A stretch of DNA of 54,108 nucleotides, the filler included, from Bipalium vagum (Eukaryota): assembly GCA_037834085.1 (NCBI GenBank). It is 3 parts of 3 records of this genome, joined end to end, with 100 filler letters (N's around TTAATTAATTAA, not from the genome) between each part and the next. Parts side by side here need not be neighbours in the genome. Positions count along the whole stretch, not along the records: positions 16,001 to 38,070 come from JBBMKC010227543.1; 2 more parts are not named here. One strand, 5' to 3'. Positions within the stretch are counted from its first letter, which is position 1, and every line of letters begins with the position of its first letter. Position numbers and translations under genes: made by a program. This document shows, one piece after another, positions 2,555 through 37,500 of this stretch. The notes below the pieces were generated by a model that searched no databases, was not told where the DNA came from, and worked only from the letters and a program-made list of their open reading frames with translations.

Positions 2555-4605
2555 ACGGGATTCACCAAAGGAAGCTCCTTTTCACTCTTTAAGAGTATTG
2601 GAGATAACTCTCAGCCAATTAAAGTAAAGGAAGTGATGATAAAATTTTTTATTAGCGCTGAGGGTGATAGTCATATGTAAAATCTGAATTCCAAATGAGC
2701 TCCAAACCCTCACAGGGTTATCATGAATTGAACAGTTCCCTTTTGAACATCACCTCGGTGTCGACGAACAATTCTCCCCTGTTGAGACGATTACAGATCA
2801 ACAAGATCAAGCATCTTTTCCAGTTTAAAAGCAAAATATCTCCACTTGCTAAGGATATAACCAATTACCAAGAATGTCTTGTTAGTTGATTTCTTTAAGA
2901 TAATAATTAATTAATTATATAATTTATTATTAAAAATTAAAAATTAAATTTTTTTATTAAAATTATTTGTTTAAGTGGATTTATTATAATTTTATTTTCT
3001 GTGATTTATATTTAATATATAATTATTTTTTGACATAATTATAATGATGAAAATGATTAAAATCAATATATGTATATTGGTTACATAATTAAAACAAATT
3101 AATTTTTATAATAATATATTATTTTTAATATTTCGCAAAAATATTATTCCAACTATTTTTACTTGAGACCAAATATTAAAACAAAATTTTCGGTTACAAT
3201 TTTAAATAAAATAAATAATATTCTAATTCATTTATAAAATATAAGTTATTTATTGTTTTAATTAAAGTTTCATTCTGAAATGTAATTTCCTTTGGATTTG
3301 TTTGATCTCGATTTTTGTATTAATGTAACATTGCCAGCAAAATTCCCGAATTAAAAGGATTTTATAAGTAGTATAAAAAGTAAATAAAAAGGCCCCACTC
3401 AAGTTTATATATTGATTGAAGAAAAAAAATAACGAAATGAATAAAAGTTTACTCAGAAGACATTTAATAATCAAGAAAAGAATTGATCTTCAATATTTAA
3501 CTCATCTGCCTAACAATGTTACACTACGAAAGACGAGGTGATATAAGCTGTAAGATAGGGTGGACTGTAATACCATATGCTTAGGACCTCTGACAAGTTT
3601 GAGAATAAATAGTTTTCATGAAGAAAATGCTTTATTCTGAAAGGATAGAGATAAAACAGTGTTAGGAAGAAGGAAGACAATTCGGTGAAGAGTATTTTGT
3701 TTTTACTCAGAATTCATAAGGGCTTTTACAAATCATTTTTCTTTTTACGAGTCCTTATTCAATTCTATTTGATTAAACACACTTAACCTACGATCTTTTG
3801 CAATGCTTTGGACTCAAATTTCTTCATTTCTATTATATCCAGGTCTTGATATTAAATGGAGGTACATTGATAATATTCACTGGTCATATGATACCAGGAA
3901 ATATATCGAAATATTAGTGTTCAAAGAACACTTCAGGGTGCAAGGTCGAACTGATTCGCACTGGAAACCATAAAAGGGTTTTTTATAAAGAAGAATTAAA
4001 AATAAAAAAAAGATGACCAAATTTCAAGAAAGTGCTGGTGATCATAATGACAGTCAAATCAAATTCATTCTCCACTATGAAGACGTCCACCTGTCAAGAT
4101 CCTGATGGTCTTTGACACTAGTTCCCACTATCAACTTATATTATCTTAATAACAAAAGATTTTCACTTTAATTAATGAAAATAAATCGATTTATCAATGT
4201 AATTAAAATAACAAAAAATATCAGATTAATTAATCAATTTTTTTATATATATTTAAAAAAAGAGAAATGAAAATATTTTTTATATTTGGAAAAAATAAAT
4301 ATTAAATTTTCATTTTTATACAATTCAAACAAAATAAATAATAATACTTGATTTTGATAATATTTTTTTTTCATAAAAATATTTTTCAAAAGGAAATTCA
4401 ATTATTCAGAAAATCTGTTTTTGAACTGATTTCTCCTCCGTATTTTATGACAACTTGTTGAGAGAGGATGGAAAACTTCCTCGTTTTATTACTGTTTTAA
4501 ATGAGATCATTACGTCAAGAAATGTTATGTAAGAAATCATAAAATTAACAATGATAAATAAAGTAATACGTACCATTAATAAGTTTTAATACAATAATAA
4601 TAAAG

Positions 4606-19600: not shown

Positions 19601-22600
19601 TGAGTCATATTGAAAATTATTTAGTCAGAAGATTTTAATGTCATAATTTCTTTAAATTTTCATAATTATTTTAAAAAAATTAAAGAATTACAAATTATGC
19701 CAAAAATAAAATCAAGTACATTAAATCATTTAAAGAATGGTTAACGAATTTGACAAGGAAGTATATTTTAAGCGATGGAGATTACAATATATGAAACAAA
19801 AAAAGAAAATTCTGAAAAATGATTCAACATATTTGCAGCCCAAAATATAGCGTGGAATCGAAAATCATGGGTAACCTAAACTAATTTTATTAAGAAATAG
19901 GTAATCAAAACATGGTCTATCACAATTTTCAATCGATTTATGCGAGTGTTTTATTTTGATAAATGTTTCACCTGGAAAATTGAGCAACGTAAGATTTTGA
20001 AAATTTTTAAATAAATTAGATCAACCAAACAACTCCCGATAAAAAAGACAAAAACAGTGATTTATTTCAAATAAAGGATATGGTGTTGTTATTAAACGGG
20101 GAAGTTTTTCTAAAATGTTTGTCTCTCCTCTGGATATGATTTTTTTCCAGGTATTATGGGTGTTAATGATAGTCCTAGTCGCTTTTCCCATAATTGAATT
20201 AATTTCTGCTATTTTAAATCCTAATGCCCCGAATGTTTGGTAGTTTGATGGGATCCACGAACCCTAGGCTCCGATTATAAATGTTTTGATATCATAGTAC
20301 CATGTTCTTCCGAGTTTGAATTCGGCTTCGTCCAATAAAATCTGATATTTTTGTTAGTTTGCCTCGTCATTACCCTTGATAGAGATCTCTGACTCAAAGG
20401 GGACTTTGACGTCTATAAATAGGTATCTTTTAAGCCTTTTATTGGCTAAGAGTCTATCAGGAATTAAGATTTGACCTAAAAAATTCCTTTCTTTTCAACG
20501 TGCATTTCCCATTCCTTTTAAGTGTGGATAACAAATCAATTACGATAACGCGTACATCATTGTCTTTGTCGTACAGTAGGCATTATGTAGAGGCAGCTGC
20601 ATAAGGCTTGTCTCTTCATTCTCATAAGAATTTCTAAAGTTGCCGTGTTTTTTCAATTTTTTATTGGTTGGTAAATCATTAGTGCGATACTTCTGAATAA
20701 AGTACCACTCGTCTGTACTGCACATCTGTCCGTTCATCAGTTTTTTATTAAGGCGACCATTTAGGACAAAAGTTTTTACCAGTATTCCTGCGCTGCACAA
20801 GTTAGCCAAATTCTCAAACATTTTTTCCTCGATTTCCTCATGTAAGAATGGACATAGCAGGTGAGTTGCGAAATTGTCAAACATTGTGATTTTATTTCTA
20901 GCTTTGATGATTGTAATGATTCCACTGTTGTTGTCCAGTTGAAAGACTATTTTGATATTGTGGTACTTATCAAAATAATGTATATCCATGCTAATCTTGG
21001 ACCACCAGGATCTTTGATGGCCTCATTGTGTGTTTTGTTTAAACAGTCAATGCCAATTTATATTATCGTTGTGTTTGACTGAGATTTTAAGGAATTCAAG
21101 ATGAAATTCAGCATTTGTTTATCTGAGGTGTTCAGCATCCGATGAGCTTGTATGATTGACTGGGTTAAATATTCATCGAATGTTGATATACAACCCAGTC
21201 CACCATATTCTACTGGACAGTATAAATATCCAATTGGAGACGACGTTGAGTGTGAAAGTAATTCACGTAGATGCTTCCTAAGAATGAAATATAGAGAGTA
21301 ATGTGTACCTTCACTATTAGTCGTAGTTTAGGAGCAATTTAAATATGATATCGCTGTCTTAAGTTGCGGAACGCAAAGATTAGTTTCGAATGAAGGCCGT
21401 ATAGGCTTTTACGGCCTGTCAGGGATATTTTTTGCGCAACAGATTCGTGACTGATTCATAGGTATTATGAGGGTTTCGTTCACTTTTAAATCCCCAAGTA
21501 TCTGTACTATTCTCCATCCTTAGTATTAGGTATAGGGCTTCCGTTGATGTTTATCTGTCCGATCTTCTTAGAGAGATTTAAGAACGCGCATTTAAAGGCG
21601 TGGGCTGTCATCCCTGACCACAAGATAACATTAATCACATCGTTCAACATGTGTTGCAGATCTCCAATCTTGTTGGCAACAATAGCTAAGTTATCTGAGT
21701 AAGCAAATACTGCAAATTCCAACTGAGGGAATTTTCTGTAGTTTTCCGTCAAAACCGTATTTATCGTTATATTAAATAAAAACCTAGATAATGGACAGCC
21801 GTGTTTTACTCCTCTCTTAATTGCTATAGAGCCTGTAGAAATGGTCTCGCAGAAAACTTTGGTTATATACTTATATACAAACTTCCGTATGCATCTGCAA
21901 TATCAATGAAATAAATAAAAAGATCCTCCTTTTTTATTTAGCTTCCTCGATTTTCAGAGTCAGAATGAAGTTGTGTTAGGAATAGCCTTCAAACTGCTCT
22001 AATGATTTTTATTTTTTGTGCATCAACTTCTCTTCCCAAACTCAGTCCTCTAACTGTTTGCACAAAATTGACGTATAGAGCTTGCAGCTGGTATTTAGAA
22101 GAGCAATCGGACGTCATGTATTGACTTTCTAGTAGTCGTTTTTGTTCTGCTTTGGAATTAATTTTGTTGAATATTCTCTCGACAGGTCTGGTATCTTTCG
22201 TTCAAGCATTATTGACTATAAAAATGTTCGTAGATCAGGAGCTCTGGGTCAGTAATCACGATCTTGTTATATATGATCCCATGTGGGTCAGGGGAAGATT
22301 TTTTGTTTCTGCTTTTCAGAGTTTGTAGGATGTCATCTGCAGTTTCAGCTTGCTTGATTATTGGAGCAATCCGGACGACCAGTTAGGCGGCTCTGGGATT
22401 GTCGATTTTTTTTTAAAGTCCACCTTTATGTTATCCAGAGTTGGACATGTCCTAATTTCTGGCTCATCGATGTTTCATATTATCTCCATCGCTCATTTCA
22501 TGTTGTTGTTGAACATTACTTTGAGATTTTATGGTTTAGCGTTCCGTGTAAGCCTTAGGTCAGGTTTGGTCCGTTTTATAGTTTTCTTAGGTGTTGAGAT

Positions 22601-25600
22601 AGGAGCAGTGAATAGCTCCTGACTCATTTTGCTGGTCGAAGTTTGTTGCTTCGTGGCATCTAGCGATTCGAACACCTGATCTTCTTCACCTATGATAATA
22701 TTGTTGATTCCGTTTTCCTGATTAATGTTTTGTGAGTATGTTGTGAATTTCGTTGGAGAATAGGGTATGAAGTTTCCCTTTTGTGTTTTTGAAGTTAAGA
22801 TGGTCTTCGAAATTTTGCCCGTTATCCATCGTGATATTTACAGCCTTGTATTTTCCGTTTCTTCTTTTGTCAATATCAAATCTGACTTTAAGACTAGTTT
22901 TGAATCTGATATTTTTGTTAGGGATCCTGCAGTTAATACCTGTTTTGTGGCAAAATATTGTGGAATTGTCTTCTAATTTTAAAAAAGCATAATTGCTCTT
23001 TTCTCTACTATTCACTATGGTCTCTACAATTTTTCTTTGGATGATGTTCATCTTTTTACTTCTTTCAGTTACAGCTTGATGGATTTGTTTGGGCATTTGC
23101 GGTTTACATTGACGAAGGAATATATCTTGAATAATAATTTAAAAATTTCTGATATAAAAAATTTATACAGAAAAAACGTTTGAGAATCAATCGATGAAAC
23201 TACAAATGTTGAAGTTCTCGAAAAAACAAATAATTTATCAATCTTATCTGATACATCAATGCTATTGTTTTGGCTAAATATATTGTAGTTTGTAACAGAC
23301 GCAGTGCCAAATAAGATAAAAGCAGCAAATTGCTTAAGCTGATTTTAGAAAAATAAGATTCACTTAACACGCATTTTTCACGATTTTCATAGACCATTCG
23401 AAAATACAAGGAAGTATTTTCCGAAAGTAGACTGCTTAATTAGCAGCACAAAGAAATTATTTTCCAAATTTCACTATAGAATAGAAAAATTAAAGAATTT
23501 GTTCCAACTTTAAAGCTTCTACTGAAACCAGACATAGGTAAATGTTGACGTGGTTAGACGCAACTGTTTATTTTGCGAACTTTTCAATTTTAAAAGAAAT
23601 GATTTTTGAATTTGCAGGTGAAGAGTCAATTCTGCTTAAACATGCACAAAACATTTGAAATTAGATGGTATTTGTGAGTATTTCTTATACCTTAGAACAA
23701 ATTTTGCACGCTTACAGATAACAATGATAACTTTTGAAAAAAAGGCAACATTGTTTGTTGATTCGGTACATTCTATCAGAAATATGGAGAAAGCAATATG
23801 TCAAGGATAAGGGGAAGAAGGCTGTGCAATATTCAATAAATTTAGGTTGACTTTCAATAATTTGAATTTAATTTTATATGGTTATATTCTGAATTGTTAA
23901 AGTTATATAAATTCGAGCCCCAATAATTACTATTAATAACATAATTGGTTTAATAGAAATCGATGTCGAATGGAAAAGTATTTTTATTTTAATTTTATTT
24001 AAATTGATGTGACCAAGGTAATGATTGATTATAATAAATTATCGGATAATAGAAAATATTTTTCAATAGCTAAAAATAGAAATTTAATCTTTCACACTAG
24101 ATTTCGTTAAAGAAAAAAAAATCGTTAAAAAAAGTCAAGACTCAGAAAAACATTAATATCAAAAAGAATTATATTAGTAAAATTTTAATAGAAAGAATGT
24201 CAAAAATTTTTTTATCCATTTACATACTAAGTAAAATGTAACAAACTCTACTATATAAACTTTTTCATATCGAAAAAGTGTGGTCACAAAACAAGCATGC
24301 AATTTTTATTTTGAAGATAAATTTTATCTAAAACTCAAAAAATTGGCATTTATTGAGACTGTAGAAAATCCAGTCAAGTCACCATATAACATTAAAAATT
24401 CTGATTATATGAACATACGATCATTAACTGCAACAATGATTCCATTTTTGTTTCTAATGAAATGAAATAATTGATCGTTTTACATGTCTAATAAATTACG
24501 AAATTGATTATTTTTTATTGAATTTACAAAAATTTAGATTTTATAAAATTTTAATATTATTGATTATAATATCAAAGTTAAATAGCTTTATAAAATTAAT
24601 CAATATTTACATAATATTATAAAACTGAAAAATAAATAAATCAATTGTATTTATAATTTTCAAATCTCAAATGAAACGTATTCTTGTAATTCTTTAATAT
24701 TTATTTCATTAAAAATGTCTAAAGAATTAATATAGTTAAAAGAATTTCTTTTAAAGCAATGAAAATATTATCAAAATTAAGCAAAAAGCTTATTAAGAGA
24801 CTTCCTTGTTTACTATAATAATGTATAATTAATTTGATTTAAACAATTTAACAAAAATCAAATCGAAATATTAAAGAAAATTAAAAGTATGAAAAATAAT
24901 TCAGTAATAATTAAGATTACGAGATGATTCTTCATCAAGTTTTAAGAACTGCCGGGAAAAAATTGTCATGTAAACTGTAGTCACATAATCAAAACAAAAA
25001 ATCATTGACAATAATCTTAATTATTATAGCAATTAAAAACAATCTAATGAATTAATAATTAATAAATTTTTCCTTTCATTTGAACAAAATTTAAATAAAA
25101 TAAATACAAATTAAATATAGAAATCGATAATTTATTTTTATTAACTTTCATCATTATTATGTCAATATACTCTGTTCAAATATAAAGATGATCTATTTTG
25201 GTTAGACTTATTATTTATTAATTATCATAAGAAATTAGATTATTGATCAAATTGATTAAAAATATTTATCAATTGAAAATAATATTGATTTACGGTTATA
25301 ACTTCTTTGATTTCTTTAACCACCTTTTCTACCTTTTGTGATTCTACTGATAGAGTCTGTTTTGGTTTCTGAATATTTTTAGGTTGTTCCTTTTTTATTT
25401 CGAAAGTGCTAGCGATTTCATCATCCATCGGAGGTCTATGAATTATCAATTAAGCACAAAGATCAAAGATAATCTGTGTAGATTTTCTAAATTCATTAAT
25501 ATCAAAATAAAACCAAGAATCACTGATTCTTATCACAATATTATTTATTCTGAAACCTATACCTGGTTCCATACATATATTTAAATAACTAATCATCGTG

Positions 25601-36039: not shown

Positions 36040-37500
36040 TACAGTGTAATCCAAATTGTTTGATCACGGTATTCAAACCCAAAATTCAACCATTATTACT
36101 CTTAATATGATTCACTAAATAAACCTGATCAACGGTCCATATTTTCCATATTCTATTGTATTTGGAACGAAGTTTAACGTTTAACAATCAACAATTTAAT
36201 AATATATATAACAATATAATATATATTTCGTTAAGTTGTACCTATGTTTGCCGGATTCCCACTGCAGCAGATTCAAGTATAGGGTGACCCATATATAGAT
36301 ACCGCACAGTCCAACCTTTACATTTGGTAAACCAGCAAACATAAACATAAGTACACTTTTAGAACGAATAACATTTATATTCAAGAACATTTTTAAACAA
36401 AATTTAAACAGAAAGTGGTCCTTTTTCGGAACAAATGCGTATTTTTTGTCGAAAGTGTTTAAACAAGGTTTTCCCAGACTCAGCTGCAATTTCCTTAGAG
36501 ATGTGTGTCCAGATTCGTTTCATTTTTGGTATACTGTCAACTGGTTTTTTCAGCATGTGATATCTGTGCTTACAAAATGCTCAAAAATTTTCAATTTGAC
36601 GTAATCGTGGCACATTCGACAGGTTCTGTTCTTTAGAAACAAAGTTGACGCCCTCTTCCCTGAGTTTGGCCGTCACAATGTTACAATAATGCGGAGTTGC
36701 CAGATCAGGACAAAATAAAATTGGCCTTTGGACATCCAACTTTTGTAAAAACAGCAAAAGACGCTTTTCAATACATTTTCTTAGATAAATTTCACCATTA
36801 ACAGTACCATTAGTCACAAACGGCTCTGAAACAGATCCATCTTCTGCCAACGCTTGCCAGATCAGAACGCCTTTTTCAAATTTACCGGTTTGAACTACAC
36901 GTTCTTCAACTGGTGTCTCCGCTTCATCATCCGACAAATAATATTGGTTACCAGGCACTTGGGTCTGATCTAGTGCCACATATGTTTAGTCATCCAAAAC
37001 AAAGAAGTAATTCTTGCCACTTGGAAGACTATCCTTGTAAAGCTTAGCTGATCACTTAATTGATCGCTATATCTGATCTTTATTATACTTATGCTTCCTC
37101 TGTTTATTTCTGCTACGCAATCCAACCGCTTCTTTCACTCTCCGATAGGTAATACGACTCAGATACAATTGCTTTGATGACACGCGCTCTGACAGTTCGC
37201 GTGCTTAAACATTTTTCTTTTGTGTTTACAACTGGTTTACGACCTGGTATTGACTTGTAATCTTTTACTCCACTCTTCAGAAAGCGTTATATCACATTCC
37301 GGATTGTTCTCTCTTTAATATTTTGCTGCCGAAAGTGGTTAACCGTAGTCAGTTTATTTTGTGAATTTTCTTGGAAAAAAGCAATAATTGCATTGGCGTT
37401 AAATTCGTGTTGCCGTCTCTTCATCTAGAGGATTATCACTAAATAAGTTATTCAATAAAAAGATCAATAATACGATTTCAAAAATGTTTTTGTTTTAGTT
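36040..37500 (-). mobile_element. Tc1-superfamily DD37E (ITmD37E-like) transposon, decayed
   Basis: LDD*TYV, KFEKGVLIWQAL, GTVNGEIYL, CPDLATPHY...NVPRLRQIENF with exactly 37 residues between the second D and the E; TACAGTG terminus at 36040. Confidence 0.85.

Follow-up and report, generated by a model that had tools for sequence, protein, structure and literature searches.

A decayed retroelement copy with a cold-shock domain

We analyzed a 54,108-nucleotide stretch of DNA (the window) from the genome assembly of Bipalium vagum (GCA_037834085.1; 440 Mb in 272,664 contigs), and in it a retrotransposon devoid of long terminal repeats (non-LTR) whose upstream region codes for a cold-shock domain (CSD). 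The window is AT-rich, with 18-37% GC per 1-kb interval. Six-frame translation of the minus strand from position 20041 to about 23110 revealed a single decayed copy of the element, in which a 124-aa open reading frame (ORF), a linker, a reverse transcriptase (RT), a thumb, a CCHC knuckle and a restriction-like endonuclease (RLE) follow one another in this order. The limits of the copy (20041..23110, minus strand) are those of its homology with 30-40 other copies, the flanks of which vary from copy to copy. This region is likely to represent a dead, 5'-truncated and internally deleted copy of an old two-ORF long interspersed nuclear element (LINE) with many genomic copies, in which a CSD protein (ORF1) precedes an RT-RLE protein (ORF2) and the expression of which would be of the readthrough type.

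The remnant of ORF1 (22566..23096, minus strand) starts with an ATG at 23094-23096 and is cut by an internal deletion. Its intact 124-aa frame (22725-23096, minus strand; six-frame translation) holds the CSD (22818..23027, minus strand), which extends from VETIVNSREKSNYAF to AVNITMDNG and keeps RNP1-like Y-A-F and RNP2-like F-C-H residues. Sister copies have 21 bp after codon 4 that are deleted here, and lack the 1-nt insertion that shifts the window frame near 22775. Then come a linker rich in Ser, Thr and Lys (22566-22817, minus strand; six-frame translation) and the junction of a copy-specific deletion of about 380 bp, near 22563, at which GGACCAAACC is joined to TGACCTAAGG (22553..22572, minus strand; multiple alignment of 13 copies). 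The remnant of ORF2 (20111..22565, minus strand) was delimited by tblastn searches of the copies with the intact ORF2 of a sister element, L066, and with L025, a natural 369-aa RT-thumb-knuckle fragment; it comprises an N-terminal extension, the RT, the thumb, the CCHC knuckle and the RLE. The RT N-terminal extension and fingers start at about 22585, and the RT core (21400..22298, minus strand) shows the motifs SSPDPHG, FAYSDNLAIV and YLGI, as well as RPIALLNT, with a match to PF00078 over 21510-21902 (E 3.4e-12). About 75-90 bp that other copies have are missing from the window RT near 21864-21877: the matches of all other copies break at query positions 1273-1287, with about 90 bp extra in the subject where both sides matched.

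The CCHC knuckle before the endonuclease (20573..20647, minus strand) is degenerate and reads HGNFRNSYENEETSLMQLPLHNAYC; sister copies such as L025 have an intact CRNCYGKEETALHALCNC. Within the likewise degenerate PD-(D/E)xK endonuclease (20213..20467, minus strand) we read the motifs LIPDRLL, YLFIDVKVPFE, QKY and IIGA(stop)GSW. The C-terminal frames of 15 copies end in ..ARAETNI and a stop codon; in the window copy the ancestral ORF2 stop, at 20111-20113, is TTA by mutation. A short 3' untranslated region (UTR) follows (20041..20110, minus strand), with a T-rich tail, TGTTTTTGTCTTTTTT, without poly(A), defined by the 3' end shared by 21 copies; the window element itself terminates in ...CACTGTTTTTGTCTTTTTT at 20041-20059. 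At the other end, the window copy is truncated about 15 nt before the ORF1 ATG, and full-length copies have about 178 nt more of 5'UTR. Besides this truncation, the copy has undergone two internal deletions, and several frameshifts and stops interrupt it. An RLE-type non-LTR element on the minus strand, with its features in this region, had been proposed in a first-pass annotation of the sequence, and the PF00078 match and the order of the motifs bear this out.

The cold-shock domain is part of the element lineage

Chance does not account for the CSD stretch, of which the genome has at least 41 copies with 71-90% identity. Moreover, matches to the CSD and to the RT are collinear on six contigs (C96631, C97628, C122457, C239535, C89336 and C241996). 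It could be imagined that the CSD ORF is a retrocopy of a host Y-box gene, or a chance open frame, that simply abuts one insertion of the element, as the window's own CSD copy fails Pfam and the 5' BLAST homology at first seemed to stop inside the ORF. The break, however, is the 21-bp deletion: in other copies homology extends through the ATG and, in most, about 178 nt further, to a common 5' end, CGTCGACGAAGTTATATCGAC. The number of CSD copies, their collinearity with the RT, the presence of the domain in diverged sister families (at least six sister elements) and the absence of the host's canonical CSD genes from the ORF1 matches together refute this explanation, and confirm the earlier proposal that the CSD belongs to the element lineage and not to an adjoining retrocopy. 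Judged from these alignments, the element lineage has a genuine CSD, conserved as one of its modules.

Copies of the element end at ...CACTGTTTTTGTTTTTTTT and are followed by unrelated flanks; 21 of them share the exact 3' end point. The element therefore has neither a poly(A) tail nor site specificity, and site-specific insertion, which we had considered, is ruled out by the unrelated 3' flanks. A role of the CSD in target binding finds no support in these non-specific insertion sites. Copy 5' ends vary, and the search with the 5' part returned 52 candidates versus 939 for the whole element, which fits 5' truncation, the usual pattern for LINEs. The copies thus behave as those of a LINE do: they end at one 3' position, are truncated to varying extents at the 5' end and lack LTRs.

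Two additional observations concern individual copies. A stretch of about 100 bp, 94-96% identical between copies (..AAATTTAAAAATCGAGAGATATTTGAAGAAATGAACAGTGAAC..), abuts the element 5' end in L008:1132-1236, L009:1198-1283, L012:1237-1289 and L007:807-867, whereas L006, L022 and L002 lack it. It may be an extended variant of the 5'UTR or a repeat that received the insertion. Also, L005:1464-2209 is an internally deleted copy of about 750 bp in total, in which the CSD ORF (to ..STPRK) runs straight into the final 70 or so endonuclease-region codons, followed by the 3' end.

Two ORFs and a copy-specific deletion

In the window, the frame is unbroken across the junction between the CSD region and the RT region, which had been taken to mean that the element codes for a single CSD-RT-RLE protein, interrupted by decay frameshifts or stops only. 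The CSD would then be an N-terminal module of the RT-RLE protein that stands in place of zinc fingers or Myb domains for target or primer binding. We aligned 13 copies from the ATG onwards, eight of which are undeleted in this region (L008, L006, L009, L010, L002, L017, L023 and L022). The window copy lacks about 380 bp; accordingly, C122457, C241996 and C97628 show gaps of 381-392 bp relative to the window. The deletion fuses the tail of ORF1 (..STPKKTIKRTKP) in frame to about codon 70 of ORF2 (..DLRLTRN), and the segment lost comprises the end of ORF1, the TGA stop with its context and the first 70 or so codons of ORF2. Other deletions in the same region are found in L012, L007 and L005.

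The copies that keep the region tell what was lost. In L008:1466-2158, ORF1 is natural and uninterrupted: its 231 aa run from MPKQSY through the CSD and a basic tail to ITGNQT, followed by a stop. The ORF1 stop is TGA in seven of the seven copies that retain the site. In L017 and L002 the frame runs directly on past this stop (...NQT, stop, RSGKMFRKKLNENRAPSVDTLRNIKPYNQINSH...), and the sequence that follows aligns to the N-terminus of the intact sister ORF2. ORF1 and ORF2 thus share a frame, which is why the frame is joined across the window junction. We conclude that the single CSD-RT frame of the window is a deletion artefact of that copy. No intact copy of the window's family was found; the longest natural frames are of 231-369 aa.

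A continuous ORF is, in consequence, very improbable as the ancestral state. The presence in L012 of another deletion in the same region could be seen as being in its favor, as could the lack of an N-terminal zinc finger or Myb domain in the sister ORF2, the place of which the CSD might have taken. However, the window and L012 deletions differ and are copy-specific; the in-frame TGA is found in all seven copies with the site and also in the sister family of L066; sister CSD frames extend over 278-475 aa only, apart from RT frames of 752-992 aa; and the insertion sites have no sequence specificity. The claim of a single ORF does not stand, since copies with the site have a TGA after a 231-aa ORF1 and an ORF2 in the same frame; a CSD-RT-RLE fusion is plausible via stop-codon readthrough only.

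Sister elements in the same genome

When the genome was searched with L025 as a protein query, many relatives were detected, with 44-52% identity and open frames of 750-1050 aa. One of them, L066 (from C208602), has an intact ORF2 of 943 aa that matches RVT_1/PF00078 with an E value of 5.9e-31. Among proteins of solved structure, those of R2 are its best matches (E 1e-48), and its C-terminus aligns to the knuckle and endonuclease of R2 (9nl3, 9dou; E 7e-9), including C..C..H..C, PD, D-V-x-V and K-Y. No zinc finger, Myb or Ulp1 (PF02902) match was found in the scanned protein pieces of the CSD family, in the L066 ORF2 or in its first 215 aa, nor did Pfam detect an endonuclease/exonuclease/phosphatase (apurinic endonuclease, APE) domain in the L066 ORF2. 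Upstream of this ORF2, and in the same frame, L066 has what the contig end leaves of an ORF1, namely its basic tail, and then TGA CGG TCC GGG.

Scans with PF00313 and with the ORF1 protein placed a CSD upstream of an RT on six further contigs (C201211, C160080, C200513, C207204, C199027 and C195757). In all six the two matches share both strand and frame, for which the chance expectation is (1/3)^6. The open frames around the CSD (278-475 aa) are separate from, and arithmetically adjacent to, those of the RT (752-992 aa), as in the pairs of 291 + 968 aa and of 475 + 992 aa. Pfam scores of the sister-element CSDs are 27-36 bits for a cut-off of 27 (C201211, 36.3; C160080, 34.6; C200513, 28.5), and the CSD of C201211 is related to ORF1 of the window's family (E 1e-6). 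ORF1 relatives in the genome span identities from 90% to about 25%, many with intact frames; the CSD has therefore been kept through a long diversification of these elements.

L066 (1-3057) has a contig word depth of about 297 in its best-matching sequencing run, and also occurs as 100%-identical, short, low-depth contigs in runs labelled as three other organisms. These could stem from a young multi-copy family of close relatives, or from mislabelled or contaminated samples. Elsewhere in the window, an ORF at 36581-36979 was considered as a transposase fragment, but this was a guess without Pfam support and was set aside.

A single in-frame UGA between ORF1 and ORF2

In the window's family the boundary reads TGA CGT TCT GGG AAA ATG. 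Across the genome TGACGNTCNGGG is found 139 times, versus 86 times for a control pattern; it lies at the predicted boundary in four contigs of the window's family (C97628, C122457, C217744 and C155537) and, beyond this family, in L066, in C201429 (ORF1 53% identical) and in C192171 (RT 48% identical). Read as DNA, the TGA-CGN-TCN context is present in L066:181-192 and, for the window's family, in L017:4362-4373 and L002:1198-1209, both on the minus strand.

A stop at this place is also found outside this genome, in the contigs of the nearest database relatives, which are metagenome elements (L069, L070, L071 and L072). In L069, an upstream ORF of 540 aa without a Pfam match (263-1882) is followed by TGA TGG at 1883-1888 and by the RT ORF in frame. 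The upstream ORF of L070 is at least 676 aa long, again without a Pfam match, and ends with TGA CAA at 2031-2036; there is no in-frame ATG in the approximately 120 codons read after it. L071 has an upstream ORF of 951 aa with a Ulp1 protease, then TGA CGG TCC at 3209-3220 and, before the first Met, the sequence ..SSVDTL.., which matches ..APSVDTL.. of the window's family. In L072, an upstream ORF of 408 aa without a Pfam match ends with TGA CTA G at 1845-1853, and a Ulp1 ORF follows in frame. L066, L069, L070 and L071 have exactly one internal stop each in 1019-2070 codons, always TGA, and in five of the six lineages read as DNA the TGA is followed by C. Thus, every readable relative has one in-frame TGA between an upstream ORF (CSD, Ulp1 or no Pfam match) and the RT-RLE ORF. 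Readthrough at UGA-CGG and UGA-CUA is a classical feature of plant viruses and alphaviruses. In addition, a predicted stem-loop starts 9-14 nt past the UGA in two elements, L066 (190-268; a GC-rich stem of about 19 bp, z -2.99) and L002 (1120-1195, minus strand; a 12-bp AUGUUCCGCAAA/UUUGCGGAAUAU stem, z -2.08); the two are unrelated in sequence.

The shared frame could instead be incidental, or serve reinitiation: two separate proteins would be made and no fusion, with ORF1 ending at the UGA and ORF2 translated by termination-reinitiation or from an internal start. Reinitiation is common in bicistronic LINEs and has been proposed for L1 and SART1. An ATG lies 4 codons past the stop in the window's family and 14 codons past it in L066, which would allow termination-reinitiation, and in L072 the Ulp1 ORF and the RT ORF, in a different frame, overlap through an ATGA stop/start. 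Against this, the frame is shared in all cases examined (the six sister contigs, the window's family, L066, L069, L070 and L071); the stop is always TGA, and C is the next base in all but one of the lineages read as DNA; L070 has no nearby in-frame ATG; and in L071 the conserved SVDTL precedes the first Met. R2 proteins, for their part, are translated without a required AUG (PMC13580325). We regard reinitiation as a somewhat unlikely alternative, though the strongest one.

Besides the downstream ATGs, several results count against readthrough. The six CSD+RT sister contigs are not among the listed exact matches to TGACGNTCNGGG, and their stop codons were deduced from coordinates and open-frame lengths; downstream stem-loops are not significant in L071, L069, L070, L072 or L017; and no RNA sequencing run contains L066. 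Taken together, codon context and frame moderately favor programmed readthrough over termination-reinitiation, its main rival, within the overall model, and the recurrence of the arrangement looks like conserved programmed readthrough across a LINE clade.

The ORF1 domain and canonical cold-shock proteins

We then asked what the ORF1 domain is. PF00313 is matched by five natural, stop-free copies that align with that of the window (alignment A1), with a best E value of 1.6e-6. A search of all PDB sequences with the A1 profile returned eight chains (E 1e-3), every one of them a cold-shock or Y-box protein. Likewise, an exhaustive HMMER search of 1.84 billion representative proteins gave five significant matches, all to canonical CSD proteins, none of which carries an RT; a word-indexed protein search with ORF1 gave no matches. 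Among the aligned copies Y36, F38, F48 and H50 are invariant, and the RNP1/RNP2 residues of the element align to Y72/F74 and F85/H87 of YB-1; the position of YB-1 W65 is non-aromatic in the element in the profile alignment. The profile scores do not separate Y-box proteins from bacterial Csp (22.2 bits for YB-1, 22.4 bits for Csp), and the length of the loop between strands 3 and 4 is Y-box-like, with no gap versus YB-1 and a 3-residue gap versus bacterial Csp.

Three results speak against this assignment. The CSD ORF of the window itself falls below the Pfam thresholds and has no CSD match, so that the PF00313 scan succeeded with the five other natural copies and failed with the copy for which the domain was first proposed. 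An AlphaFold2 model, though it places five beta-strands in the expected order, is of low confidence (mean pLDDT 49.5). Finally, a Foldseek search of PDB with this model gave no match at E <= 0.001, and the oligonucleotide-binding (OB) proteins IF1, S1, the Unr CSD and Csp appeared only in weak rows. We nonetheless judge the profile matches and the conserved residues sufficient to conclude that the ORF1 domain is a real CSD.

The genome also has CSDs of another kind: the PF00313 scan gave seven strong canonical matches, of 66-89 bits, on C108060, C210096, C153993, C39035, C95369 and C18597, presumably host genes of the Y-box, Lin28 or Unr type. Two of the seven lie 300 bp apart on C153993. These loci are absent among the 146 genome matches to the element ORF1, and any capture of the domain from the host would therefore be old.

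A probable NeSL-like branch of RLE LINEs

The element has the traits of the RLE (R2) supergroup, namely a LINE-type RT, a CCHC knuckle followed by a PD-(D/E)xK endonuclease, and no APE domain. In a FastTree phylogeny of 65 RT proteins the families of this genome group together (support 99), and P0001 is the sister of their clade (support 100). Both fall within a 30-row clade (support 99) that holds most of the Ulp1-bearing proteins, apart from the rows with zinc fingers, Myb domains or R2 names. This suggests that the family is a NeSL-like branch of the RLE LINEs; the clade label is an indirect one, because named NeSL-1 and Utopia references are not among the rows of the tree.

None of the 120 closest database RTs has a CSD, as assessed both with precomputed Pfam matches and with our own hidden Markov model with the filters off. 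Outside this genome, proteins with both a CSD and an RT, a search for which the first-pass annotation had called for, were found neither among these RTs nor among the significant matches in the 1.84 billion proteins. The closest external relative of the element is L069. Pfam matched nothing in the upstream ORF of either L069 or L070, and a word-indexed protein search with ORF1 of L069 returned only that ORF itself. A stretch of this ORF1 (residues 150-242; VGIRILFDIVKRKGK..ATNI; ..VGIRILFDIVKRKGKSTLSATNIRHANNSLFE..) resembles the last two strands of the CSD of the element, and was rejected as a candidate: the hhalign E value of 0.05 is not significant, an Atlas features search scored as noise (0.83) and the single-sequence AlphaFold model is poor (pLDDT 50.7).

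Proposed expression and significance

The layout of an intact member of the family may be pieced together from these copies. It would have a 5'UTR of about 178 nt; an ORF1 of about 231 aa, with an N-terminal CSD and a tail rich in Ser/Thr and Lys/Arg; a single in-frame UGA, in the context UGA-CGU-UCU-GGG; an ORF2 of about 940-960 aa, as estimated from the 943-aa sister ORF2, with the RT N-terminal extension, RT, thumb, CCHC knuckle and RLE; and a 3'UTR of about 60 nt with a T-rich end. We suggest that the majority of ribosomes would terminate at the UGA, giving an abundant CSD protein that could coat and chaperone the element RNA in the manner of L1 ORF1p or of retroviral Gag and its nucleocapsid. 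A minority would pass the leaky UGA and produce a rarer CSD-RT-RLE fusion, which may perform target-primed reverse transcription at non-specific sites. More broadly, a NeSL-like clade of RLE LINEs may have a retrovirus-style expression, with a Gag-like ORF, a readthrough UGA and an RT-RLE "Pol", the first slot being occupied by a CSD here and by Ulp1 or a protein without a Pfam match in relatives; for this wider proposal we see the balance as even.

RLE LINEs (R2, NeSL/Utopia, R4 and HERO) are usually presented as elements with one ORF, guided to their targets by zinc fingers and Myb domains; they are now under development as gene-insertion tools. A full-text literature search, with subscription journals and Repbase outside its scope, returned no CSD-bearing LINE, in agreement with the initial impression that the architecture is undescribed; it held no report of a cold-shock domain as the binding domain of any LINE ORF1, and none of readthrough in non-LTR elements. 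If our reading is correct, the CSD protein would be a previously unrecognized class of LINE ORF1p, and the cold-shock OB fold would enlarge the set of domain types of ORF1 proteins, which comprises RRM, CCHC, PHD and esterase. A conserved ORF set apart for an RNA chaperone would also mean that the ORF1/ORF2, or Gag/Pol-like, division exists on this early LINE branch. The recurrence of UGA-CGN in distant relatives offers a testable case of possible programmed readthrough in a non-LTR retrotransposon. On a practical level, the two-ORF layout explains why gene callers split such elements into two "genes", and the window copy is a caution that an in-frame deletion in one decayed copy can mimic a domain fusion.

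Comparison with known systems

NeSL and Utopia elements, which bear an RLE, are the subject of Malik and Eickbush (2000) and of Kojima and Jurka (2015; PMC4640811). In both the present element and the NeSL/Utopia elements, one CCHC knuckle and then a restriction-like endonuclease come after the RT, and Ulp1, a NeSL trait, is present in the upstream ORF of a close metagenome relative, L071, and is also carried by L072. NeSL/Utopia elements, however, are described as making a single protein, which carries 1-3 zinc fingers at its N-terminus and/or a Ulp1 protease and, in some, an RNase H, and most are site-specific, for SL1 or U2 genes (PMC4640811). In contrast, the present element has its CSD in a separate upstream ORF, an in-frame UGA as the divider and non-specific insertion, and the scanned family proteins of this genome show no zinc finger, Myb or Ulp1 match. 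With R2 (9nl3, 9dou, 8gh6) the sister ORF2 shares matches over the RT and, separately, over the CCHC-RLE region, including PD..D and K. R2 differs in having N-terminal zinc finger and Myb domains (PMC7650587, PMC13580325), only one ORF and its target in 28S rDNA; we saw none of this in the element.

YB-1 (5yts, 6lms) and bacterial Csp (3a0j) are the sole PDB matches of the CSD profile, and the RNP1 Y/F and RNP2 F/H residues are kept. The identity is only about 25-30%, the W65 position is non-aromatic and the tail of the element protein is unrelated. Proteins with a YB-1-type CSD are RNA chaperones that package messenger ribonucleoproteins, and bind by stacking on the aromatic RNP1/RNP2 residues.

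The layout also resembles viral gag-pol readthrough, with one in-frame stop between a nucleic-acid-binding structural ORF and a polymerase ORF, UGA-CGN or UGA-CUA-G contexts and, in some element lineages, a stem-loop a few nucleotides downstream. MuLV reads through a UAG, and tobraviruses and alphaviruses use type II UGA-CGG or UGA-CUA contexts. Unlike these, the element is a non-LTR retrotransposon in which readthrough is predicted from the sequence, and two of its relatives have UGA-UGG and UGA-CAA.

LINE ORF1 types with RRM, CCHC, PHD and esterase domains were reportedly distinguished by Khazina and Weichenrieder in 2009. As in L1, the element has a small upstream ORF with a single-strand nucleic-acid-binding domain and a basic tail, for which a role in packaging and chaperoning the transcript of the element itself seems probable. 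It differs from L1 in that the binding domain is a predicted cold-shock OB barrel, and in that ORF1 and ORF2 share one frame, split by a single UGA.

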